DNA of 63,164 nt, filler included, from Klebsormidium nitens (Eukaryota; Plantae; Klebsormidiophyceae): the NCBI GenBank assembly GCA_000708835.1. It is 7 parts of 7 records of this genome, joined end to end, with 100 filler letters (N's around TTAATTAATTAA, not from the genome) between each part and the next. Parts side by side here need not be neighbours in the genome. Positions count along the whole stretch, not along the records: positions 14,720 to 37,873 come from DF237651.1; 6 more parts are not named here. The stretch is one strand, 5' to 3'. Position 1 is the stretch's first letter, and each line of letters begins with the position of its first letter. The notes below the pieces were generated by a model that did no database searches, was not told the origin of the DNA, and saw only the letters and a list, made by a program, of their open reading frames with translations. The translations under genes were made by a program, and so were the position numbers. This document shows, piece by piece, positions 14,720 through 38,232 of the stretch.

Positions 14720-16895
14720 TTAGCCGGCTGTGCCGTCTCGGCACAGCAATCCACCTCCTACCCATAGCCTATTCTACTCGTCCTGCCGCTTGAGCTGCCG
14801 CTCTTCCCAAGCATCTAGCAGCTTCTCAGCCCACTTGCGGCCCTCCTCCTCCTTCTCCCTCTGCGCGCGGTAGGCATCGTACTCCGCGCAACGGGCCTTG
14901 TACTCTTCATCTTCAAAGGCTGCGTCCATCGGGTGCTTGGCACCCTGGGCACTGTATGCGGCACCGACTGCAGGCTGAAACAGGCGCCTTGTTAGTCTGA
15001 GTGGCCTGCAAATACTGTTGGTGAGATGCAGCCACATACGCGGGGTCGCTGGTGTCAACGACCTGCCAATCCCGCTCAAGATCATACGTGGGCGGCGGTC
15101 GTGCACCTAATGCACCGTATGCAGCTGGCGTCGAGTCTAGGGCGCCAGCGCCCTCATCATCAGAGCCGGCGGAGGGTCCAGGGAGTGCAGCTTGGTGCGC
15201 GTTGCCAACCCGGCGGCCCTGCACAAGGGTGGCCATTTGAAGGGTCAGCTTCTCGACCTGAGCTGCTAGCGCATCCAGGCGCTGGGAAAGCCCTCGCTCC
15301 TGGCTACCGCTGCTCTTACCATCGCTCGTCCAGTCGGGTTTGAGCTCAGGGTGCGTCGTCCAGCAAACTGCTTCGGTGTGACCGCGCTTGTGACATGCCT
15401 GGCAGCGGCTGTCCGTGCCAGGGCACCTGTTGGCCTGGTGGCCGGGGTGCCCACACCTGTAGCAAGCAGAGGAGTCGGCAGCGCTGGCTGCATGAGCAGA
15501 TGCATGCTTGGTCTTAGGCGGGCCAGCCTCTGCCCACCCGCGCATCCCAGCAGCATAGGCCTGCGCAAGCTCAACACGCTCAGCAGCCTGCGCAGCATCA
15601 TCCAGGCTATAAATGCCACTGGGGCTTTTTGCCCAGAGGATCGGCTCAATGCGTTCACGCAAAGCAGGCGGCAGGGCATTCACAAACGTCATTGCCTGCT
15701 CACGCGCGTTCAGCAAACCTGTTTCTTCAGCGAGGCGCTCCAGACGGCTCCTTAGCATCCTGCAGGTCTCGTCCTCGCGCTTCTTCAAGGTCTGCAGCTC
15801 GCGCACCTTCGCTGCACTAGCAACGCCGAAGTGCTCCTTAAAGAGCGCAATAACGTCAGCGATGGGATCCCAGTCCCTGTCAGAGGCGCCCTCAGGCTTT
15901 GTGAGAATATCCTTCCTGCGCTTGCGCCAGAGCTGCAGCGCTTCATGCTCAAGATATGCTGGCAATTGAAGCAGAAAGTCCGCCTCAGTTAGCTTTTTAT
16001 CTTTAGACTTCGCTTTTGCATAAGCAGCCAGCAGTCTGTCTTCGAAATCCTCAACCGACTGGGTGCCTGGTCGCCCACTGAACAATCCAACGGAGCTCGA
16101 TGGCCCCGCAAGCAGGGCTGCCCCACCATACTCGCTGCCGATCATTACCAAGTGGACGAGCGCAAGCCAGCGAAACACACCAATCACGGACAAACCCATT
16201 TTGCCGCGGGCAGCTGACAATGATCCTGAAAGATAAGGCGCTGAAAAGCACGCAGTGAACACCCTCCCTGAGGTGCCGAACCAGGTCTCACCGTTTTATC
16301 CTTGTGCTCGGCCGCGGGGTGCAACATACAAGCGCTCACCTGACGGAGGCGCTTACAGAAACCACCGGCGCACACACAAAGGGGGGCCTGCCGGGAGCTC
16401 ACTCGCGTGGGGAGCTCTAATATGGCGCGCTCAACAGTCGCACAGCTGGAGCGTTGCCTCCTGCCTGGCGGCCTGCGCACCAGCAGTTTTGCTGGGGGGC
16501 TCTGCCACAATCCCCGTGCCTCAGGCTGCTCTTCTGGCGACGTGCGCCTCAGCCTGAATTTCTGGCGCACGGCACCTCAGCTTGTTGACGCGCGCTGCGC
16601 CCCTTTATGCTGAACCACCGGCCCTTTTGGGCTGATCCACTTAAAGTGCAGCTCCTTTGAGCTTTTCCTCCGCCCCTTTGGACTGAACTGCTGCCCCTTT
16701 GGACTTGCAGCTGGGCTCCTTTGAGCTCTCACTCCGCCCCTTTGGACTTTGGCTTCAACTCAGAACCCCTTTGGGCTACTGTCCTGCAGGTTGCTCACAG
16801 TACTACCTGCAGCAACTCTTTGTATGTAATGTTTAGCTCCGTTTAACGTGCGAACTCATCACACGGAACTCAATGTTATGGCTGCTGTGAGGACA
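14720..16895 (-). mobile_element. Ty3/gypsy-like LTR retroelement fragment (gag plus probable 5' LTR)
   Basis: ORF 14913-16262 is gag-like with two CCHC knuckles (CYRCGHPGHQANRC, CQACHKRGHTEAVC). The upstream region has CCCCTTTGG(A/G)CT repeats and starts TGTCCTCACAGC at 16895 on the minus strand (LTR-like TG start, inferred). Confidence 0.7.
14913..16262 (-). CDS. gag: Retrotransposon Gag-like protein with two zinc knuckles
   Basis: 449-aa ORF with a capsid-like helical region (F...LP..LR..I) and two C-X2-C-X4-H-X4-C motifs. The true start is probably downstream of the annotated one. Confidence 0.75.
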   Translation of the reverse strand: MFTACFSAPYLSGSLSAARGKMGLSVIGVFRWLALVHLVMIGSEYGGAALLAGPSSSVGLFSGRPGTQSVEDFEDRLLAAYAKAKSKDKKLTEADFLLQLPAYLEHEALQLWRKRRKDILTKPEGASDRDWDPIADVIALFKEHFGVASAAKVRELQTLKKREDETCRMLRSRLERLAEETGLLNAREQAMTFVNALPPALRERIEPILWAKSPSGIYSLDDAAQAAERVELAQAYAAGMRGWAEAGPPKTKHASAHAASAADSSACYRCGHPGHQANRCPGTDSRCQACHKRGHTEAVCWTTHPELKPDWTSDGKSSGSQERGLSQRLDALAAQVEKLTLQMATLVQGRRVGNAHQAALPGPSAGSDDEGAGALDSTPAAYGALGARPPPTYDLERDWQVVDTSDPAYVAASHQQYLQATQTNKAPVSACSRCRIQCPGCQAPDGRSL

Positions 16896-23247: not shown

Positions 23248-24537
23248 CTAAGTCTCTCCTACTCCTGAATTGTTCAGCCTAGGAGCATTCTGTACACCAT
23301 GTATACGAAGCGCAGCCTCGTCGTATGCTCGACCCGCTTCCTCGGCTGTCTCGAATGTTCCGAGATGCACCTTCATGCCTTGGTCTCTGATTTGGGCCAC
23401 CCACTTGTCTCCAACCTTCGAGCATCCGACTATTTCTGTGTCTCTCTCCTTCCTCTTCTTGTTCACCTGAGGGCCTGTCGACTGCGAATTCGTCGATCTG
23501 GGCGCGTAGCACAAGTTCTCAGCGCGGTTATCCTCGTTCTTCCAGTTCTTGTGATGTATGATCATGCCACTGTTCTCAGCTTCGTCCACCTCTTCCACTG
23601 TCTTCTTCTTCCTCATCACGTAGTCGCTCAGGTTCTGCTTCGTGCTGTTGAAATATACGTTTCCCCCGCGGGCACTGTTCGCGCTGAGTCCGGTCGCTTT
23701 GCCATCATCGTTGACCATCAGTTCCACGAATACGTCATCGTCTACCAGCACATCGATTGTCTGCTCGCGGGTGACTTTCGCCTTCAACACCGCTGCTCCC
23801 ATCTCGTTCCGCGAGATCACGAGGTTCTCTCTCTGAGTCCTGACGTACTCTGCCAGGGCTTTCTCGCACGCCTCCTCGGCCTCCGAGAAGGTTTCGTAGG
23901 TACCCTTGGCTAGAACCTGACCGTTCCTCTTCATATTGTGAATGAAGAACTTCTTCCCACTCGGCTTGATCGGGAATCGCTGCTGCTTTTTGATGCCCGA
24001 TTTTGCATCGATGTCTGCGAAACCCTCCGGCTCCTCGACGCCATTCAAGTGCGCCTGGTCTCCATATGCTCTCTTGCAGAGGTCGTACTTGTAGGCGGCC
24101 ATGGCTTCTTCTGGATAGTAACCCAAGACCTCGCCGTTCAAAGTCGCGCGCCATCTCCTCTCTGGCTTACCCTCCTTCATCTCGAAGACGCCCAGGTATG
24201 CAGAGGTTCCAGAAGCCTCCTTTTTCTTCATCGCGTGTGCAGCTGCAGGCGTGCAGATCTTCAAGTTCGATTTCGTGAGGTTGAGGTGATCGCCATCTAC
24301 GAAGGTTACCACGTCCGACCCCTTTGGCTGCTGTCCGATTACCATGTGACTCAATCTGGTGAAAGGGTCTTCCAGGGTCTTGGACTTGACCACATACTTG
24401 GAGCTCTTGTTTCCTTCTGTGGCATACCTCCAGCAGAAGGGCCTGACGCGGTCCTCGTCCTCCTTGTCCACGATTGCGTAGACAGACTCTTTACCATCCT
24501 TGACCTCGATGAGCGCCGTAGATGAGGAGCTTGCCAT
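23248..24537 (-). CDS. HNH endonuclease with AP2 DNA-binding domains
   Basis: HNH-like segments [16 protein letters not shown] and [16 protein letters not shown]; AP2 domains ([24 protein letters not shown]; [32 protein letters not shown]). Confidence 0.85.
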
Positions 24538-25627: not shown

Positions 25628-25718
25628 ATGAGTCACTGGCATGACTCAGATCTGAAACGGTGAATATTGTTTTTATTCAGCACGCAGTGCCCGTGCTGAG
25701 ATTTCGATGGATAACGAC

Positions 25719-27833
25719 TTAATTGGAGTAGGCGAGACCAGCCATTCCCGTTTCCGCCGCGGAGTGTTCCTCCGCGGACCGATCGTCCCTTGCGCTCGCT
25801 CCGGCTGACTAGGCCCTCACTGCGAACGGGTGGCTTTGCGACCTGTGACGTTGATCGTACCGCAGCTTCGTCGTAGCGCTTCGGTCGACCTAACAAGCGG
25901 ATCACCCATCGTCGAGACTCTCGCTCGCGCATCCGACGAACTTTTCCCATACCCAAGTGGTTGTCTTGGCCACGGTCCTCTCGCGAGGAGCCGCTTGGGG
26001 TCGTCGGCGTCAGGGCTTCCCTGCTACCAGCACACCTTGCAAACATATATTCACTAGCACATGGCCATCGGTCGGCTGTATAACCGGCGGGGGCAAAACG
26101 GCTTTTTCGCAGATAAGAGCCCGAATTATCTGCGCCGTGTGCTTTTTCGAGCAGCATTTTACTCATGATCCTCAAAATGTTAAAGTTAATGGCAATAATC
26201 TTGCACCTTGCGGCCACCATATTCGGCGGGAAGGTGAGATATAGGGTGGAATTATCGATGCGAGAGAAATTAGTTGATCCACTTGGTTGATGAGATGACG
26301 CCTCCAGCGAAAATGAGTACACGTAGACGTGCTTCTTGGGCACGCGAGGATGGTGCTGATATGGCTGCACCAACCTGTGATATGTGCCGGGCCTCTCGCT
26401 GTACCTGTCGTGCCCGTTCAGCATCAGCTTCGCACTCTGCACGTAGTCCACGCCTGCGACCTCGCCGAAATCGAAGATCATATTTCCGGTCTTGGAGTTG
26501 ACGGCTGCGGAGCTCTCTGGGGTCACTACCCAGATCAGCTCCTTCACGGGGTGGTTGAATGACAGCCGGATCTTCTGAGTGCTGGCCGAGATGCTGGCAG
26601 GGATCGATTCGTCACCCGTGAATTGTACCTGCTCCACGAGGAATTCGTGGGACGAGGAAGCGAACTTTCGGCGCTCATCCGTATCCAAATAGATATAATC
26701 GACGTAAAGAGAGCAATCGATCAGAGAAAGGGGTGCACCGTTGGAGGTAGGGGTCACCACGTTGATATCTGACCTGACCAGGGCTGCTGCCGGAGCCAGT
26801 TCTACATTAAGCTTAATTTCATGGTATTGCAGCGCGATAAGCGGAAGAGCGTTGCCAGGGAGCTTGTTGAACCAGAACTTGAGGGGGATATAATACGTGC
26901 GCTGGCCGGTCTGCGTATGGAGCTGCCCGCCCTCGTAGTTGTCCGCCTCGTTGTACTTGCCGATCATCTCCCGCAGTCCACCCTCCTTCTCGGCGGGGAC
27001 CGTGAGCTCGTCGTCGATCTCGTAGTAGGCATCAAAGTGCTTGTCGATGCGCTGACCGCCGATCTCGATTTCCACCGATTTAAGGAGGGCGTGGCCGACC
27101 GCATTTACGTACCTGACATAAGTGGAAGTGGAGCCTCCTACCGTGACCGTCTGATCCAGTGCAGGAAGCGTGACTTGCAACCACATATTCGTAATCAAAT
27201 CTCCATTTCGGCTGATATTGAACGTGGATTTACGATTTAAATCGCACGTGCCGTTTGATGTCTGCGCGATGGATTCCATAGCAAAGTTGGTATGCCTCCG
27301 GTAGACCAACCTGAAGAAAGTGATCTGAGGTGTCCCGGTAAGGTAGGCATCCTGAGCTCCGATAGCGACCAAAGAAAGCACTTCTATACAGCCCAGAGCA
27401 TTTCGCTGAGGGACGGACTATACCTTAAGGGTTCAATGCCGGTGGCTACCCGACTCCCCCCCAACTCCTCCTAGTCTCTGAACCGTCTTCCTCGCCCTGG
27501 CCGGAACGGGCGTAGGAAGCTTGGCTGCAGATCACCCAATCTCGAGCTGTTTTACCGTACGCGAGGCGATTAACCTGCTGCCTGCGGTCCGATCTCTCGG
27601 ACGAGGTGGTCGCGTCGAGCTTCAGGATGTCCCCGCAATTCGAAGTTGTCGCGGGATCCGGACGAGGGCCGTGTGCCCCCTAATCGATTTCCCACTAGCC
27701 AGTTTTATCGACGCGCTCGGACGGAGAGCGCGCCCCACGAGACTTACACCGTTTGCCCTCGAGAGTGGTCCGTGGAACTCGACCGAGGCGGCTGACTGTT
27801 GAGGACTGCTTAATTCGTTAATCCTCCTGACAT
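25719..27833 (-). CDS. mcp: NCLDV major capsid protein, 3 exons separated by two group I introns, 420 aa
   Basis: Exons 27833-27821 (ATGTCAGGAGGAT), 27380-26161 and 25748-25719 total 1263 nt (420 aa + stop). The protein starts [37 protein letters not shown] and ends QPSGSTNFSRID...NFNILRIMSGMAGLAYSN*, matching both canonical NCLDV MCP termini. Confidence 0.95.
25749..26160 (-). ncRNA. Group I intron (412 nt, no ORF of its own) before the last 9 codons of the MCP CDS
   Basis: The 5' exon ends ...AUGAGU and pairs with IGS GCUC (U-G); the intron ends ...CGGAAACG. R-like UCACAGGUCG and S-like AAGGGACGAUCG form P7 C(A)GGUCG/CGAUCG. P3 GGUGUGC/GCCACC; P9 hairpin CCGCGGAG-GAACA-CUCCGCGG. Removal restores ILRIMS|GMAGLAYSN*. 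Confidence 0.88.
27381..27820 (-). ncRNA. Group I intron (IC1-like, 440 nt, no ORF) after nt 13 of the MCP CDS
   Basis: The 5' exon ends in U and the intron ends in G. IGS AAGCAGUCCUC pairs with the 5' exon GAGGAU (U-G at the splice site) and with the 3' exon UGCUU (P10). P AAUUGCGGGGA, Q GAUCUGCAGCC, R UUCAGAGACUA, S AAGGUAUAGUCC; P3 CAACUUC/GGAGUUG. Confidence 0.92.
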
Positions 27834-30623: not shown

Positions 30624-31733
30624 ATGGAGCCCACTGGCGCGAAGCGAAAGCGACAGACGTACGAGCCACCCACCGAGCTGGGTCGGTACCTCCACCATCC
30701 CGTCCAAAAGGAGTACGTGGGCTACCCTGACGGAAGCATCTGGTCGAAGAAGAGTGGCGCTTTCATTCAGGGGAGCTTGAACGGCGAATACGTGCTGATA
30801 AATCTTGGGGACAAAAACGTTTACAGGCATAGATTCATCTTCGAGATCGCCAATCAACGAGTTATTCAACCCCTAATGCACGTCGACCATATCAACGCAG
30901 ACAAGACTGACAACTCTTGGACCAACCTTCAGGAATTGACGAGCCAGGCACACGCGATGAAAACATCTGCGGATAATCCCAAGCGTGGTGCGAAGTGTGG
31001 AGTGACTTTGGGCCAAAAACTTGTCGCCACACACATTGGCACTGGAGAAAAACTAAGTTTCAATTCCCAATGGCATGCAGCGAGGGAGCTGGGTCTTCAC
31101 CAAAGCAACATCGGCAAACAACTGCGAGGCAAGTTGAAACGAGTGGGGCAGTATACTTTCGAGGTGGCTTCTGCATACATGGATCAGCAGCGGGACCTTC
31201 CGGGGGAGCAGTGGGAGGACGTGCCGAAGGACCTCGCAGTCGAGTACGGCTTCCAGCCCGGCATCATGAAGGGGATCCGCATAAGCAATCTCGGACGCAT
31301 TCAAGACAAGATGGGGAGACGCACCTTTGGATTGGAGGTACCCTCGAAATTCCCTGGCGACTGCTACATGAGCACCTTCGTTGGTGGGCAAAAAAGACGC
31401 GTGACAGTCCACGTCCACGTCCACGTCCTATGTGCCTTGACTTTCGTCGGACGGCGTCCGAGTCCCACTCACACTGTTGATCACATCGACGGACGCAAGA
31501 AGAACAATGCCGCCTCCAATCTGAGGTGGTATACGCCGAACGAACAAGGACAGAATCAGAGGTCGAATCGGGCAGTGCACCAGCTGGACTCAGAGACTGG
31601 ACGCGTGCTTCGGACGTTCGCCACGATAGCAGAGGCCGCCCGAATCACAAAGTGCCCGAAAGCGGGTATAAATATGGTATGCTTGGGCACGAGGGCAAGA
31701 TCGGGCGGCTTTTCTTGGAAGTACGCGACTTAG
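30624..31733 (+). CDS. HNH homing endonuclease with two HNH_3 cores and NUMOD-type domains
   Basis: HVDHINADKTDNSWTNLQ and TVDHIDGRKKNNAASNLRW; NUMOD1-like C-terminus (AVHQLDSETGRVLRTFATIAEAARIT...GGFSWKY). Confidence 0.85.
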   Translation: MEPTGAKRKRQTYEPPTELGRYLHHPVQKEYVGYPDGSIWSKKSGAFIQGSLNGEYVLINLGDKNVYRHRFIFEIANQRVIQPLMHVDHINADKTDNSWTNLQELTSQAHAMKTSADNPKRGAKCGVTLGQKLVATHIGTGEKLSFNSQWHAARELGLHQSNIGKQLRGKLKRVGQYTFEVASAYMDQQRDLPGEQWEDVPKDLAVEYGFQPGIMKGIRISNLGRIQDKMGRRTFGLEVPSKFPGDCYMSTFVGGQKRRVTVHVHVHVLCALTFVGRRPSPTHTVDHIDGRKKNNAASNLRWYTPNEQGQNQRSNRAVHQLDSETGRVLRTFATIAEAARITKCPKAGINMVCLGTRARSGGFSWKYAT

Positions 31734-31773: not shown

Positions 31774-32496
31774 ATGACAGGGTCGTCGGTGCAAGGTCAG
31801 GGTATCATCAGCTGCAACATCGCGAGCGGCGAGAAGAAGAGATTTGCTTCTCAGTCTCAGGCAGCAAAGGAGTTGGGGTTATTTCAGAGCAATATCTCCC
31901 TGTGCTTGAAAGGGAAACTCGCAAGTACAGAAGGGTATACTTTTGAGAAGGATGCAGATTATGAAAATGACCAGGCAGACCTGCCTGGAGAGGAGTGGAG
32001 GAAGATACCGGAAGACGTAGGGATAGCTCAGGGCTTCTCGTCCAAGATGCTGGCCGGCATGCAATTCAGCAGCGCGGGGCGGGTGCGAGACAAGCGCGGG
32101 CGCAGGACCTTCGGCACCGACCTGGGTTCGCACAAGGTGGTGAAGGTGGCCGACGGGCCCCTGAGCAAGAAAGCACGCGTCCACGTCCTCTGCACACTAG
32201 CATTCCACGGCCCTCCCCCCGGCAAGGATCACATAGTCCAGCACATCAACGGCGAGAACAGCGACAATAGCCGGGAGAACCTGACCTGGGTCCACAAGAC
32301 TGCACCAAGCGATAGGCGTGGGACGGTCAAGGCGGTGCAGAAGATAGATCGTGAGAGCGGGGCCGTCCTGGCGACCTATCAGAGCATCATGGAGGCAGCA
32401 GAAGCGAATAATATAGCCCACAGGAATCAGATTTCGGACGTCATTGCAGGCAGGAAGGCCACAGCAGGTGGCTACGGCTGGCAGTTTGCAGATTGA
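31774..32496 (+). CDS. HNH endonuclease, tandem paralog of the C-terminal two-thirds of 30624-31733
   Basis: FASQSQAAKELGL, DLPGEEWRKIP, VHVLCTLAFHGPPP..HIVQHINGENSDNSRENLTW, NUMOD1-like tail. Confidence 0.8.
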   Translation: MTGSSVQGQGIISCNIASGEKKRFASQSQAAKELGLFQSNISLCLKGKLASTEGYTFEKDADYENDQADLPGEEWRKIPEDVGIAQGFSSKMLAGMQFSSAGRVRDKRGRRTFGTDLGSHKVVKVADGPLSKKARVHVLCTLAFHGPPPGKDHIVQHINGENSDNSRENLTWVHKTAPSDRRGTVKAVQKIDRESGAVLATYQSIMEAAEANNIAHRNQISDVIAGRKATAGGYGWQFAD

Positions 32497-32511: not shown

Positions 32512-33304
32512 CTACTCCAACGAGGGCACGAGATCCAGATTGTGGAATCTTTCCGAGGTATCTTCTTCGTAGTCCGCGAACGATTGCAATATGCTACGAC
32601 CGATGTGCTCTGCTAGCTTCGGAGGGACTGCGTTGCCGATCTGCGTGTAGACTGCTATACGTGGACCTTTCCACAAATAAGTCGTAGGAAAGGACTGAAG
32701 AGCGGCACACTCTTGTTCCGTCAACATCCTGCAAGATCCATCATCATACAAGACCAAAGCTTCAGCCCCGCGATTCTTTAAATATCCAGCCCTCACGGTC
32801 CTCGAGGGTCGTTCAATATCCACAAACATCGCATAGTGGGCATTTTGCTCGTGTTTTCTCATGTAATATGCGGTCTTCTCCGGCCTCATCCAATAAAAAG
32901 CGGCTATGTCGCTTTTGTCTTTCAGTACACTTCCGATCGTCTGAGGTAAGTCCTCTGTGGAAGGCGAGGGAAAATTGAACGTCATGACGGGATGATGGGC
33001 AACGATGAAGAGGCGTTTTCTGCTCTGAGGGATGCCATAATCGAGGGCAGTCAAATATGTATGTTTCACCACATATGAAGAATGTTCCAAACTTGTGCAC
33101 AAGTTCTGCAAGTGTTTACCACCGTCTTTCGTAGCAAACCCCGTCACGTTCTCCATGACAACCATTTTGGCATCGCACCATGCAGCTATTCGTACGACGT
33201 ACTCATACAGATCATCGCGTGCATCTCCACGGCACCTTCTACCTACCATCGAAAAACTCTGACAAGGAGGGCTCGCAACGACGACATCAATCACTGTGCC
33301 TTTA
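32512..33304 (-). pseudogene. C5 DNA cytosine methyltransferase, C-terminal part (motifs IV-X), interrupted by a transposon
   Basis: DVVVASPPCQSFS (IV), VVMENVTG (VI), PQSRKRLFIV (VIII), RMLTEQECAALQSFP (IX), YTQIGNAVPP (X). The ORF-track start MGENGN lies in the transposon TIR. Confidence 0.9.
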
Positions 33305-33470
33305 TTACCATTTTCGCCCAAACTGTCGCCCGTACCGGGCGCTTATTCGGACGGAAAATGAATAATAATACCGGATTAGGTCCATACGAGTACGGACTGG
33401 TACCGGCTATCCGCGAACCGCCGGGTTATAGGTTCGAAAGCCTCCGGTATCCGCGAATAATCCTCAAACT
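33305..33470 (-). ncRNA. Putative Fanzor omegaRNA scaffold (guide expected in the flanking MTase sequence)
   Basis: ~165 nt between the Fanzor stop and the transposon end, with several stem-loops (GTCCGTAC-TC-GTATGGAC; TACCGG/CCGGTA) and a TTCGCGGATA-(G)CCGG direct repeat. The position matches TnpB/Fanzor guide-RNA loci. Boundaries are inferred. Confidence 0.6.
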
Positions 33471-35298
33471 AGCGGCAGAACTCAGCCGGCCGAACTCTTC
33501 CTCCCAGCCTGCTCTGGAGCAGCCTCAAGATGTTCCGGGCGGCGTTCACGTCGCGGTTCACCGTCATGCCATAACAGCCACTGTTTCTGCAGTGGAGCAC
33601 ACTGTGAACTTTTACGGTCTTCACCACCCCATCCTTGCACCGCTTCTCCGAGTACTGGTTGTGCAGCTGCGTCTTGCAGTCGAAGTGGAGCTTGCTCGTC
33701 CTAAATTCGTCTACCGAGACCACCCTGCAGTGCTTGCGGAGCTCCCGCTCCAGCCGCTTCACGGGCCCAGAGGGTGATCCTCTTATAATCCCGGCAGCGT
33801 CCTTGTTGGACCAGTCTCCGAACCCCACGACTGTCCTCTTGCCCATGCGCTTGGTGATACCCTTGCAGATCTCGTGCAACTTCTTCTGTGCATAGATGTA
33901 CCGCTTGGACTTGAGACCCCTGAACCCCTTCCTCATGTGGAAGCTCAGGAGCATATCCAGGCGGGGAAGCATGAAGCGCACGTAGTCTAGCAGCTTGGAG
34001 CTCTCAGGCGTTTTCTTGCTGGGCATGTTGCGGATCGCTTCGAGGACCTCAGGACTCTGCTCGTACCAGTGCCTGATCCTTGCGTTGCTGAGCTTGTACT
34101 TGGCATCGTGGTAGAATTCTCGCGTCGAGCAAGACAACTTCTCGCCTTGCTCGTTCATCATGACGAACAAATCCCGCCTCCTCCCCGGGTCAAGGCCCCA
34201 CAGCTCCTCGTCACCGGTGAGATCAGGAAGCACCCCCTCTCCAGCGGAAGACCTTGGTTTGGGCTTCCTCAACACCATGCACACGGCCTTTCCATCCGTG
34301 AGGATCTCACCCGCAAACTTTCTGTTGCACGTCTCAAACTTCTCGAGGTTGAACAGCTGTCTCCAGTAGTCGTCTGCCACCTTCCTGAACTCCGGTCCAA
34401 ATGCTGGCAGCTTGGCGCCTCCTCTCTTCAACAAGCCATATAGGCCATTCGTGCACATCTTTAGGTGACTGCACTCGAAGCCGCTCTTGGTGGGAAGGAG
34501 GCTAAAGAGTCTCAGCTGCTTGCCCTTCTTCAACTCAGCTTCCGACAGAGGATGGTGCGACTCCATGTAGCGCAGGAACATGAATTGCATGGGCATGAGA
34601 AGGTGAGGGGTGGAGTCTGCTCGTCCGGTCGTGGCTTTTGGAAGCATTGCACGGTACTCCAGGACCAACGGGTCATCACCGTTGTACTCCTCTGTCAGCA
34701 TGTGTCTCATCTTTGCATAGCATGCTGAGCCATCGAGCGAGTACTTGTGCTTTAGATATCGCTTGAAGCGCCGGTAGAAGTTCGTAGCAACAGAGTTTCG
34801 GGTGCAAGTCGCCATCTGGAGGCTTGCATTCTGGTACCAGCCGGAGGCGAGGTTCTTGCTGTCCGGTGGCACATACTCAGCGGGGCGTGATGATACATAG
34901 AGTTCCACCGTCTCCCTGAAGAAGAGGTCTTTGATTGCGCTCTTCTGCCTCCCGGTGACACTGACGGCTGACAAGCATCCATAGAAGAAGGACTGATCGA
35001 GAGGTGGTACTTCTCTATCGAGCTCACACATGCGCAATACATGCAGGTTGGCGAGAAGGTAGGCCTCGCAGATGGCCTTGTTCACTTCCTTGAGCACACT
35101 CTCGAGAGGGAGGGCCTTCGCAGCCTCCTTGCAGAAGCTGTTCCAGCTGGTCTTTACGACTGTACACTCGGTCTCCCTGTTCCTCTGAGCACGGAGTTTG
35201 ACATCTTCGCGAGTTCGAGTGGGGTCCCTGAAGAGCTTGCATATGTAGCGCAGACATTCGTGCTCGAGAGCGATGTCTGGGGGCTTCTTAGGCGGCAT
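33469..35298 (-). CDS. Fanzor: Fanzor1 (eukaryotic TnpB-like RNA-guided RuvC nuclease), 609 aa, intact
   Basis: ATG at 35298 (MPPKKPP...). RuvC-I LWGLDPGRR, Fanzor1-type VVGFGDWS, shifted catalytic Glu in VVSVDEFRTSK, Zn finger (HFDC...LHCRNSGC), RuvC-III NRDVNAARNI. Confidence 0.92.
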   Translation of the reverse strand: MPPKKPPDIALEHECLRYICKLFRDPTRTREDVKLRAQRNRETECTVVKTSWNSFCKEAAKALPLESVLKEVNKAICEAYLLANLHVLRMCELDREVPPLDQSFFYGCLSAVSVTGRQKSAIKDLFFRETVELYVSSRPAEYVPPDSKNLASGWYQNASLQMATCTRNSVATNFYRRFKRYLKHKYSLDGSACYAKMRHMLTEEYNGDDPLVLEYRAMLPKATTGRADSTPHLLMPMQFMFLRYMESHHPLSEAELKKGKQLRLFSLLPTKSGFECSHLKMCTNGLYGLLKRGGAKLPAFGPEFRKVADDYWRQLFNLEKFETCNRKFAGEILTDGKAVCMVLRKPKPRSSAGEGVLPDLTGDEELWGLDPGRRRDLFVMMNEQGEKLSCSTREFYHDAKYKLSNARIRHWYEQSPEVLEAIRNMPSKKTPESSKLLDYVRFMLPRLDMLLSFHMRKGFRGLKSKRYIYAQKKLHEICKGITKRMGKRTVVGFGDWSNKDAAGIIRGSPSGPVKRLERELRKHCRVVSVDEFRTSKLHFDCKTQLHNQYSEKRCKDGVVKTVKVHSVLHCRNSGCYGMTVNRDVNAARNILRLLQSRLGGRVRPAEFCR

Positions 35299-35345
35299 GA
35301 ACGCCACCTTATAGACTACTTTTAAGAAAAAAAGTCTCGGAGATT

Positions 35346-36248
35346 TTACGCGCCTGGGCCTAGGACTCTCTGGAACAGTCTGGAGCACACGGCGGGGGTG
35401 AGCTTCTGCAAGCCATCCTCTAGAGCGGCCCTGAGGTCTGCCTCGTTCCTGGGCGCTACCCCACTGATGTGAGTCCTGAGGATATTGAAGCAGAGCTCTA
35501 CCGGGTTGAGATGTGGTGCATAGGGAGGCAGGTACTCCAGGTCGATTGCAAGTTCGCCTGCCGCTTCTGCAATCGTAGGCAGCCCTCTGCGCTTGAGAGC
35601 GTTGGTGCTCTTGTGGATGGCAGCGTTGTCCAGGACGATCTTGGAGCCCATAGGCAGCTCTTGTAGGAACCTCAGAAACCTGACAGCGTCCACAGAGCCC
35701 TGGTAAAGGTTCCACTTGACCACCCCAGTGGAGCTGATGCAGAGGAGGAGTGAGAACTTCTTGCCCCTAGGGCCAGGTCTCCTTACCACTGCTCTGGACC
35801 CACGCTGGCTCCATGCATAGCCGCGGATATGATTCATGAAGAAGCCACACTCGTCCAGAGAGAGGACATGCGGTCCCAGATCAGCTTGGATGTCATTCAG
35901 GAAAGCCTGACCCCTAGCCTCGTTGAACTCGCAGTAGGCCTTGGTTGCTTTCTTGAAGGAGAGAGTGGAAACTGCAACTCGCACATTGTGTTCGTCTCTC
36001 AGGAACTGTGCAGCTTGCTCGAGTGTGGTGGTTGGATTCTGCTGCATCTATGCTGCCAGGCTGATCATTACCAGTGGAGAGAGCTTTCGGAGGTGCGCAG
36101 TGTTGCGCTCCCGGTCTTGCAGTCTAGGGCTTCTGATCCACCTCTGGATGGTGCGCTTGGACCTCTGCAGAGATTGGCCTATAGCATCATCATCCATGCC
36201 AGACGCCAACATCTGCCTGAGGAAGGCACGCTTCTCGCTCATCTTCAT
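35346..36248 (-). pseudogene. IS630/Tc1-like DDE transposase with an in-frame TAG at 36048-36050
   Basis: HTH N-terminus (MKMSEKRAFLRQ...IGQSLQRSKRTIQRW), then VLSLDECGF, IVLDNAAIHK, YLPPYAPHLNPVE. It reads LAA*MQQ where the second copy reads LATYMQQ. Confidence 0.88.
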
Positions 36249-36500
36249 GGTGGCATGTGGTGAAAGTGACAAGCTCATGCTTGAAGGGATGGTACATGAG
36301 TAGGTATAGCTTACAGGGATACACTTGGTCATATAGTGTACCGTTATGTCGTAATGATTTGATTAATACGAAAAAAATAGGTCCCAACCTCGCGGTTTCG
36401 CGCGACACTTTTGGCAAAAAAAGGTTAAAAAAGGTGGCAGAAAGTTTGGAACCGGTGAGAGGCGCCATTCCCTTCCGAACCAACCAAAAAATACTGCGAG

Positions 36501-37037
36501 ATGGCGGCAGATGAGGCGAGCAAGAAACAAAGACTGGCGCAGCTGAAAACAGAGTGGCAGGAGTATGCGAAGGAGATACCTGCAGAGGGGAGCAGTGACA
36601 CCACTGAAGACATCTGCATGCGCCTTATGGCATCTGTCATTCTGGCAGAAAACCCAGAAGCGAGAGAAACTGACATATTGCGCCACTTCTTTGACCCCAC
36701 CCTCGGTCTTCGGGTTACGGCCTATGTAGAGGACTACGTGCTCTGGTTCCAATATCGTTTTGGGTACATTGCTGATGCCTACAAGAACGAAGACAAAAAG
36801 GACTTCAAGAGATTCATGAGCTACAAGAGGCACAATCCATATGTAAGCGAGCGTGGTCGGAAGGTAAATCTCAACAATGGCCATTTCTTGACACAGCCAG
36901 GTGAACAGAACCAGAGGTTTGGAGCAGACTTTATCGTAGGAGACGTTGGGTTAGACTTTATTTGGGAGTTTACGGATTACCTGCTCAAGGCAGAGTATCC
37001 AAACAAGCCAGGTACCAAGACTCCTAGTACTAAATGA
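36501..37037 (+). CDS. Hypothetical cargo protein (178 aa) inside the composite transposon
   Basis: Clean intronless ORF (MAADEASKKQRL...) between the inner transposon end (~36428) and the second partial transposase copy; no family recognised. Confidence 0.6.
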   Translation: MAADEASKKQRLAQLKTEWQEYAKEIPAEGSSDTTEDICMRLMASVILAENPEARETDILRHFFDPTLGLRVTAYVEDYVLWFQYRFGYIADAYKNEDKKDFKRFMSYKRHNPYVSERGRKVNLNNGHFLTQPGEQNQRFGADFIVGDVGLDFIWEFTDYLLKAEYPNKPGTKTPSTK

Positions 37038-37171
37038 GGGGTTGTTCGTTAGTTGAAACAATGCTTCTCATTGAACATGAGCTAGAGCTGCATGAGTGGT
37101 CTTTACTTCCAATCTTCAACCTGCTTCACCTGCTCTTAGCTGCGCAGAGACAGCACATGTTCGCAGCTGCT

Positions 37172-37596
37172 TCAAGTGACAGCAAGTCGCACACTGTTAT
37201 CAACTCCCAGTTCCTGTGCAGCTTGCTGGCGTGTGGTGGTTGGATTTTGCTGCATGTATGTTGCCAGGCTGATCATTAATAGTGGAGAGAGCCTTCTGAG
37301 GTAGGTAGTATTCAGCCCCTGGTCTTGCAGTCTAGGGCTTCTGATCCACCTCTGGAAGGTGCGCTTGGACCTCTGCAGAGATTGGCCTATAGCATCATCA
37401 TATACGCCAGAGCCAGCAGCTGCCTGAGGCTTTTTGCTCATCTTCATGGTGGCACGCCATACATACTCGGGTATGTATGGCTTGCAAGGATGCACATGGT
37501 CATATCACGACACTTTTATGATGTAATATAGGTTTGATGAATTAAAATATGTCCCAACCGGGCGGTTTTGCGCGACACTTCCGACAAAAACCGTAA
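37172..37596 (-). pseudogene. Diverged second copy of the transposon 5' end and transposase N-terminus
   Basis: MKMSKKP...DDAIGQSLQRSKRTFQRWIRSPRLQD...MQQNPTTT parallels 36248-35990. The end sequence GTCCCAACC..GCGGTTT.GCGCGACACTT occurs at both ~36381 and ~37547. Confidence 0.8.
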
Positions 37597-37740
37597 TAAT
37601 GATCGATTGTAGATAATCTGCCGTAAGAGTACGAACGTCACAGCAAAAAGTTGTCTTGGCTCCATGATTGGCCTCGTATGTTGCGAGTGCATGGGTGTCA
37701 ATGTCAATACCGACCGAATGGACCAAACCGGCTTTTACAG
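37597..37740 (-). pseudogene. C5 methyltransferase N-terminal part (motifs II-III)
   Basis: KAGLVHSVGIDIDTHALATYEANHGAKTTFCCDVRTLTADYLQSI joins in frame to KGTVIDVVVASPPC when 33305-37596 plus one TA is removed. Motif I (FxGxG) was not found upstream. Confidence 0.8.
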
Positions 37741-38232
37741 TTTGTCCAGAATAAAATGGCAGACGAGAAATCGGCGTCCGAAGGTCTCGTCCGAGAGCTT
37801 GGGAGCATCGGAGCATCCGAAAGGCATATCACAGCGGAAGCATCCGAAAGCAAGTATCCGAAACAAGTATCCGNNNNNNNNNNNNNNNNNNNNNNNNNNN
37901 NNNNNNNNNNNNNNNNNTTAATTAATTAANNNNNNNNNNNNNNNNNNNNNNNNNNNNNNNNNNNNNNNNNNNNCCGCTTATGTTGATTGCAGGGGCGATA
38001 GATAGGAGCACAGTGTCCTCGTCACTCAGATAAAAGGTGTTCTCTGATGGAATTCTCTTTATTTCGTAGACGAGCCAGTCAAGTGTATTCTGATGCTGAC
38101 CGTGAACCGCCAGCACGAGACGGCTCGTGCTGCGGGCCATCATGCCCAGGGTATCTTGAATGAGATCAAACATTTGAGAGCGGTTCATAAATGTGCTTAT
38201 ATAGTCAACTATTTTCCTAGCTCTGACGTAGG

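Follow-up and report, generated by a model that had tools for sequence, protein, structure and literature searches.

The stretch of Klebsormidium nitens DNA analysed here (63,164 nucleotides, assembly GCA_000708835.1; hereafter the window) includes a piece of scaffold DF237651.1 (44.7 kb), a phycodnavirus-like insert in which a C5 cytosine DNA methylase gene is interrupted. We consider it very probable that the interruption is due to a DNA transposon of the Tc1/mariner type, carrying a Fanzor1 nuclease gene together with an omegaRNA, which inserted at a T|TA|A site of the methylase gene. This element is not a new category but a well-preserved, although rearranged, member of a kind already described. 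The first-pass annotation had suspected that the family might be characterised already, and it probably is, as the K. nitens nuclease KnFNuc has been published (PMC10530073). Coordinates given below are those of the window; the transposon, its genes and its RNA, as well as the methylase gene, lie on the minus strand.

The Fanzor1 gene (33469..35298) encodes 609 amino acids (35298..33472) followed by its stop codon (33471-33469). Its frame had been annotated as uninterrupted and as keeping the motifs GLDPG, VDEFRTS and NRDVNA, and indeed it contains no internal stop. The acidic residues of these motifs, D370, E531 and D583 respectively, are invariant in the 24 members of the Fanzor family that were aligned (24/24) and coincide with the catalytic residues D383, E541 and D606 of SpuFz1, the Fanzor of Spizellomyces punctatus, indicating that the split RuvC Asp/Glu/Asp set is present. 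The protein also matches SpuFz1 (8gkh) by sequence, with an E value of 3.9e-9. Its AlphaFold model (predicted local distance difference test, pLDDT, 84.8) was superposed over its full length by Foldseek on SpuFz, GtFz and PpFz, with template-modelling (TM) scores of 0.59-0.66 and E values of 1e-18 to 1e-23, whereas the matches to Fanzor2, TnpB and Cas12f were weak (TM 0.2-0.3). The zinc-ribbon/TNB domain PF07282 reached 25.1 bits against a cut-off of 26.3, and many of the relatives have a precomputed match to PF07282. On the strength of its sequence and modelled fold, the protein is assigned to Fanzor1. RNA-guided DNA cleavage dependent on a target-adjacent motif (TAM) has been demonstrated for two nucleases of this group, KnFNuc (PMC10530073) and SpuFz1 (PMC10432273).

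The sub-family of the window Fanzor shares 82% protein identity with the commonest K. nitens cluster (KFL_016210020). The K. nitens cluster comprises at least five near-identical copies, in agreement with the "5 copies" of the KnFNuc paper. Looking up the exact protein sequences of the window Fanzor and of the SNF2 gene yielded no entry. Relatives from oomycetes were found in the protein search at 45-50% identity; no relative of the Fanzor was present in the prokaryotic genome contigs or in the viral contigs searched, and those detected in one metagenome scan were all distant (21-35% identity). A Fanzor1 of 55% identity, P0013, is labelled "transposase, Thermoplasmata archaeon MAG" (metagenome-assembled genome), but it more likely comes from a misbinned eukaryotic or viral contig than from an archaeon. 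Three annotated K. nitens proteins (P0266, P0270 and P0042) are Fanzor copies fused to a ThyX thymidylate synthase or to a kinase-like gene, and these fusions are probably artefacts of gene models built across viral inserts. Another Fanzor copy, that of the K. nitens locus L020, sits between a glycosyltransferase gene and an intein-bearing ribonucleotide reductase gene.

Upstream of the Fanzor gene lies a DDE_3 transposase gene of the Tc1/mariner-IS630 type (35346..36248), identified by its DDE_3 domain (E 3.7e-19) and an N-terminal helix-turn-helix, HTH_23 (E 1e-4). This gene is broken: it contains the in-frame stop that had been annotated earlier and, in addition, one in-frame deletion, as judged against the intact 320-aa homolog of the virus-like contig L010, to which it is 81% identical. 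The pieces of the transposase, and likewise those of the methylase, were searched separately. The order transposase then Fanzor is common to the window, L010, L017 and L018. The 47-nt spacer running from the transposase stop to the Fanzor start (35299..35345) is kept, as seen in the alignment, even in the K. nitens copies lacking the transposase, and it may be the Fanzor promoter.

The ends of the element were established by comparing the window with other copies, three from K. nitens (L002, L003 and L020) and three from virus-like contigs (L001, L009 and L010) of the JGI (Joint Genome Institute) samples 3300060284 and 3300060285; L011 is the same as L010. This comparison revealed imperfect terminal repeats that had been missed by an initial search for inverted repeats. 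At the right end the homology stops at one identical base in all copies, which then continue with differing sequences. GGTAA-TA-A is read at all six right junctions, and T-TA-TTACC at the five clean left junctions (window copy A, described below, L003, L009, L010 and L020). The terminal inverted repeats are imperfect and about 28 nt long, with 23 of 28 positions matching in the complete non-autonomous copy L020, and the right one of the window (33305..33332), placed by alignment to the left ends and by the point where homology stops, lies inside the RNA scaffold. Both junctions carry TA, in L020 as well as in the window. In the window the right copy of this target-site duplication occupies 33303..33304, and the left one (37598-37597), together with the preceding T, forms the TTA of the outer left junction (37597..37599), the predicted TAM. 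Seven bases ending in TTA recur once inside the complete copy, so that the left junction is easily misplaced by eye. From these sequence comparisons, the element is read as ending in TTACC...GGTAA, as inserting at T|TA|A and as duplicating the TA, as expected for a transposase of the DDE_3 (Tc1/mariner-IS630) type. The TAM predicted from the left junctions is identical to the TTA determined experimentally for KnFNuc. The first-pass annotation had predicted a TTA motif and mentioned one reported for a Klebsormidium Fanzor1; five left junctions, independent of one another, agree with the prediction, as does the published TAM, and the Fanzor1 mentioned corresponds to KnFNuc (PMC10530073). The other copies lie at unrelated sites, some in virus-like contigs and some in K. 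nitens, and every one has a flank of its own. At positions 13560-14420 of L009 there are four more TTATTACC-type termini, in two pairs about 70 nt apart, along with a weak match to the RNA model described below; these may be miniature derivatives of the element.

Between the Fanzor stop and the right end of the element lie 164 nt (33305..33468) that constitute the predicted scaffold of the omegaRNA, or Fanzor RNA (fRNA). A structured segment of about 165 nt had been proposed here, and the predicted fold (-69.8 kcal/mol, z = -3.56) was equalled by none of 200 shuffled sequences. The identity of this region to that of the window is 97% in L001, 92% in L002, 87% in L010 and 80% in L009, while the synonymous sites of the adjacent Fanzor open reading frame (ORF) differ by 17% in L001 and by 59% in L002. 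Among these same copies the left sub-terminal region is barely alignable, the right end being far better kept, and in L009 one helix of the scaffold is cleanly deleted. A covariance model built on five copies found the corresponding position in relatives whose proteins are no more than 55-60% identical, where the match overlaps the 3' end of the ORF and terminates in GGTAATA or GGTTATA. In the resulting alignment of seven sequences, 94% of the cells are paired and 13 pairs are altered on both sides, values that none of 500 shuffles reached; in slid-control alignments the pairing fell to 37-47%. Rfam contained no family for the scaffold, its single result being a sub-threshold match to a snoRNA. 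Together, these data point to a structured guide-RNA scaffold at the 3' end of the element, reading into the flank. As annotated earlier, the presumed transcript would run from the scaffold through the right end into the second piece of the methylase. By analogy with KnFNuc and SpuFz1, and from the position of the scaffold end, the guide is predicted to be about 20 nt long and to correspond to the first bases of the right flank (33283..33302), that is, to the start of the methylase second piece. The TA and the methylase sequence previously described beyond the element end were found as stated (TA at 33304-33303), and the quoted 18-mer at the start of the methylase second piece is unique within the window.

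The methylase gene (32512..37816) is broken by one insertion (37596..33305) and by one in-frame deletion. Its second piece matches PF00145 (E 6.8e-43, profile positions 62-323) and retains the PCQ motif. No Pfam match was obtained with the first piece (37816..37599), and an alignment with five natural homologs showed that the glycine-rich S-adenosylmethionine-binding motif I is missing from it. When the two pieces were aligned separately to the natural homologs P0118-P0123 they were found to abut. On one side the coding sequence amounts to 218 nt (remainder 2) and on the other there are 2 nt of the split codon, which fits a single 2-bp TA; the absence of a duplication and a duplication of 3 bp were both rejected on the frame phase of the methylase.

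The insert as a whole is a composite of 4.3 kb with two left ends. What borders the first methylase piece is a second left end, which is truncated (copy A, 37175..37596); the left end of the complete element (copy B) lies at an offset of 1.2 kb, and a viral-type gene is found between the two. This arrangement is an addition to the first-pass annotation. Copy A comprises the left inverted repeat, the 5' region and a degenerate transposase gene of which the first third is present. It shares 86% identity with the matching part of copy B; compared with the repeats of L009 and L020, its inverted repeat shows 89-91% identity, and its transposase remnant (37453..37175) aligned by blastx with residues 10-105 of the L010 transposase. 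The 5' region and degenerate left inverted repeat of copy B (36249..36428) lack a clean TTA junction. Given that the methylase pieces abut and that their phases fit a 2-bp TA, the left end of copy A and the right end of copy B bound the original insertion. The sequence therefore suggests that the interior of the insert was rebuilt after that insertion, possibly by an aberrant break repair that copied a second element plus its flank. The filler of about 750 bp between the left ends (36429..37174) has no similarity to the element, and the 178-aa gene that it contains on the plus strand (36501..37037) has no match in Pfam. Homologs of this gene were found in a K. subtile transcriptome (75%) and in a contig of Amoeboradix gromovi (51%), which identifies it as a viral-type gene; with no counterpart in the other copies either, it was rejected as cargo of the element. 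No contig could be assigned to its closest homolog. The homolog in the transcriptome of Klebsormidium subtile also implies that related viral genes are transcribed in this sister species.

The ratio of non-synonymous to synonymous substitution rates (dN/dS) of the Fanzor gene was 0.13 against L001 and 0.09 against L002. That of the DDE part of the transposase was 0.10 against L010, implying that the lesions of the transposase are recent. With two K. nitens copies serving as outgroups, the own branch of the window Fanzor received 26 synonymous and 12 non-synonymous changes, a ratio that argues against neutral drift for most of this branch. The 38 changes amount to a divergence of only about 2%, however, and the intactness of the ORF is unremarkable by itself. 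In sequence terms, both the Fanzor and its RNA scaffold appear to be under purifying constraint. An intact Fanzor without a working transposase is a common pattern in this family: L001, L002 and L020 have an intact Fanzor and no transposase, while L010 shows the reverse pattern.

The remainder of the piece resembles a giant virus. It encodes an NCLDV (nucleocytoplasmic large DNA virus) major capsid protein (Capsid_N plus Capsid_NCLDV), an SNF2 helicase, and SET, Bro-N/T5orf172 and RING proteins, together with several free-standing HNH/AP2/NUMOD endonuclease genes. With NCLDV hallmark genes clustered within a host assembly scaffold, the locus probably represents a giant endogenous viral element (GEVE), and phycodnavirus-like inserts had been reported in K. 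nitens as early as 2017 (PMC5294986). Within the piece there is no junction with an ordinary host gene. The evidence for a host junction is limited to a gag-like CCHC gene (14913-16262, minus strand) of a multi-copy K. nitens family, at the GC-rich edge of the scaffold (GC up to 62%). Located on the left margin of the piece, this ORF matches K. nitens KFL_007020010 (DF237651.1) with 100% identity. The family of this gene has members both in K. nitens and in JGI contigs, and the ORF probably represents a retroelement that either inserted into the viral DNA or borders it. A 449-aa gene of L010, equal in length to the gag-like ORF, proved to be unrelated to it. The description of the locus as heritable is plausible insofar as it belongs to a scaffold of the K. 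nitens nuclear assembly. The major capsid ORF (25633-27381, minus strand) has complete Capsid_N and Capsid_NCLDV domains followed by some 170 residues without a recognisable domain, a tail suggestive of a lesion close to the end of the ORF. In the K. nitens gene model this ORF is joined with the adjacent HNH/AP2 gene. Around the capsid gene and next to the methylase there are three free-standing endonuclease genes of the HNH_3 type, which also have AP2 or NUMOD-like domains (23248-24537, minus strand; 30624-31733 and 31774-32496, plus strand); for the endogenous giant virus of Chlamydomonas, a like arrangement has been reported next to its capsid gene. According to published data, genes of viral origin in K. 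nitens are enriched for repressive methylation (PMC12344493).

The closest of the known systems is KnFNuc, which binds RNA of the 3' non-coding region abutting the right end of its element and requires a TTA TAM (Jiang et al. 2023; PMC10530073). Like the nuclease of the window, it is an intronless, multi-copy Fanzor1 of K. nitens with a 3' non-coding RNA and a TTA TAM, the last two being predictions in the case of the window. The window copy differs in that it retains a broken transposase alongside and sits in a viral methylase gene. Elements combining Fanzor1 and mariner, Fanzor-only variants with a right-end guide and sharing between virus and host have also been described in an algal endogenous giant virus (10.1101/2024.09.03.611062). 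These punuivirus Fanzor families A-C of Chlamydomonas reinhardtii similarly pair Fanzor1 with an IS630/Tc1/mariner transposase inside an endogenous giant virus, include variants reduced to the Fanzor and the right-end guide, and are common to virus and host. They belong, however, to another alga (K. nitens being a streptophyte) and to another virus, and whereas their copies are more than 99% identical and expressed, those studied here have diverged (73-94%) and are partly decayed. Fanzor1 genes within TA-flanked mariner elements, Fanzor-only derivatives included, were reported by Bao and Jurka in 2013 (PMC3627910). In PUl-1, PUl-4 and PGv-1 of that study a mariner-like transposase also lies upstream of Fanzor1, with TA duplications, and the Fanzor-only derivatives carry the same inverted repeats; the study antedates the knowledge of guide RNAs and did not cover Klebsormidium. 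SpuFz1, GtFz1 and PpFz1 (PMC10432273, PMC11423790) share the fold and the catalytic residues of the window Fanzor, and their TAMs end in the transposon TA (CATA, TTAAN), but their sequence identity is 15-19% and their RNA scaffold is different. In IS200/IS605 elements, TnpB cuts the vacant site and the element is restored by recombination, a form of homing (Meers et al., 10.1101/2023.03.14.532601). There, too, the right flank supplies the guide, and the TAM corresponds to the bases lying 5' of the left end; unlike the partner enzyme of TnpB, the transposase considered here is a cut-and-paste DDE enzyme generating a TA duplication.

Taking these systems as a guide, the element might operate as follows. 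The transposase, as in characterised relatives, would shift the element between TA sites, and an RNA would be transcribed from the 164 nt of 3' non-coding sequence through the right inverted repeat into about 20 nt of the flank. Fanzor1 loaded with this RNA would recognise TTA followed by the flank, that is, the vacant form of its own insertion site, and cut it; repair off an occupied copy of the genome would then copy the element in, resulting in homing or retention. Where the site is occupied, ATA stands 5' of the guide match, in place of the TTA of the vacant site. A single base would then separate self from target, and the occupied site would escape cutting. Such copying could be well suited to viral genomes, which are present in many replicating and recombining copies. 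In the copy of the window the transposase is dead, the insert is rearranged and the methylase has decayed further, with only the Fanzor and the scaffold still intact. Landing in a viral gene by itself produces a guide that reads into a viral gene, and this is a normal by-product of insertion rather than a sign of immunity. The earlier proposal of a homing drive thus agrees with the standard model for the TnpB/Fanzor family and is not a novelty.

Several points weigh against this interpretation. Immediately next to its first catalytic motif, the window Fanzor carries one inserted residue, which is absent from the 23 aligned relatives. The covariation of the scaffold was counted on a small alignment (7 sequences) fitted to the RNA model, and it constitutes support rather than proof. 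The likeness to KnFNuc is one of shared features, and homing by a Fanzor within a cut-and-paste mariner element is an idea carried over by analogy from the TnpB of IS605. As a minor alternative, the composite could stem from misassembly of a short-read scaffold. In that case the duplicated left end and the filler would be spurious and the true locus would be a simple insertion of 3.1 kb. The K. nitens assembly is fragmented, with collapsed repeats, and the two left ends are repeats; but they are only 86% identical, the left repeat of copy B is off a TTA junction while copy A abuts the methylase in the right phase, and the filler holds a real gene. We therefore regard an assembly artefact as improbable. 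Even less credit can be given to the notion that the conserved 164 nt are a sub-terminal region bound by the transposase plus the inverted repeat, and not a guide-RNA scaffold. Such repeats are common in DNA transposons and the 164 nt do contain the right inverted repeat. Nevertheless, the left sub-terminal region is poorly kept among the same copies, the right region keeps its helices through two-sided changes and loses one of them cleanly in L009, it is preserved in L001, L002 and L020, which have no transposase, and KnFNuc co-purifies with the RNA of such a region (PMC10530073). Of the readings considered, this one has the least to commend it.

The remaining alternatives concern what the locus does at present. 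One possibility, whose chances fall somewhat short of even, is that the whole insert, the Fanzor included, is a silent relic, inactive DNA without time to decay. This would agree with the dead transposase, the rearranged insert, the decayed methylase, the aberrant tail of the capsid gene, the unique residue beside the catalytic Asp of the Fanzor, the methylation reported for viral genes in K. nitens (PMC12344493) and the low divergence of the branch, which makes an intact ORF unsurprising. On the other hand, 26 synonymous against 12 non-synonymous changes on the branch do not fit neutrality, the scaffold shares 97% identity with that of its nearest relative, and transcripts of a homolog of the adjacent viral gene exist in K. 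subtile. A silent relic is compatible with the identification of the element as a Fanzor1-bearing transposon and differs from it on present activity only. The first-pass annotation went in the opposite direction and read the locus as a single-spacer immune locus aimed at the uninterrupted methylase allele of a related virus. Under this reading, the host would express the Fanzor, which would cleave the intact methylase gene of super-infecting viruses related to the resident one, and the locus would be a heritable, single-guide antiviral one. The Fanzor and the scaffold are intact whereas damage affects the transposase, the methylase and probably the capsid gene, purifying selection is detected on the own branch of this Fanzor, the locus is within a host assembly scaffold, and competition between viruses by GEVE-borne Fanzors has been suggested in print (10.1101/2024.09.03.611062). 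If true, it would be a case of immunity derived from an endogenous viral element through the RNA-guided nuclease of a transposon, a eukaryotic parallel of the step from TnpB to CRISPR-Cas12. However, no uninterrupted methylase allele carrying the target was found in the proteins and IMG/VR searched, with the flank alone as query and not the joined vacant-site string, the K. nitens genome and most metagenome DNA being outside the search. Among 5.8 billion proteins the nearest methylases share 51-54% protein identity. The flank 18-mer occurs four times in IMG/VR, in one unrelated lineage, without TTA and without further similarity, and these occurrences are chance matches, so that no foreign replicon apart from the locus itself was found to match the guide. 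In addition, the guide is fixed by the insertion and non-renewable, intactness is not remarkable at the divergence mentioned above, the signal of selection may predate endogenisation, the sister copies, whether in K. nitens or in virus-like contigs, are no less intact and have guides directed at unrelated flanks, and the viral-origin genes of this alga are enriched for repressive methylation. An insertion-site guide is built into every TnpB/Fanzor insertion, and the immune function, left unsupported by these data, seems to us very unlikely. What is supported of the first-pass annotation is the element, its predicted TAM and its predicted RNA; the immune meaning and the target allele are not.

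In summary, our analysis provides a cleanly delimited example of a Fanzor1/mariner element in an endogenous giant virus of a streptophyte alga, with its exact ends, target and predicted TAM, scaffold and self-avoidance base. It shows one family moving between virus-like genomes and K. nitens, and ties a nuclease of the biochemically characterised KnFNuc type to a viral reservoir. Furthermore, it offers a concrete locus in which to ask whether such nucleases remain active after endogenisation.

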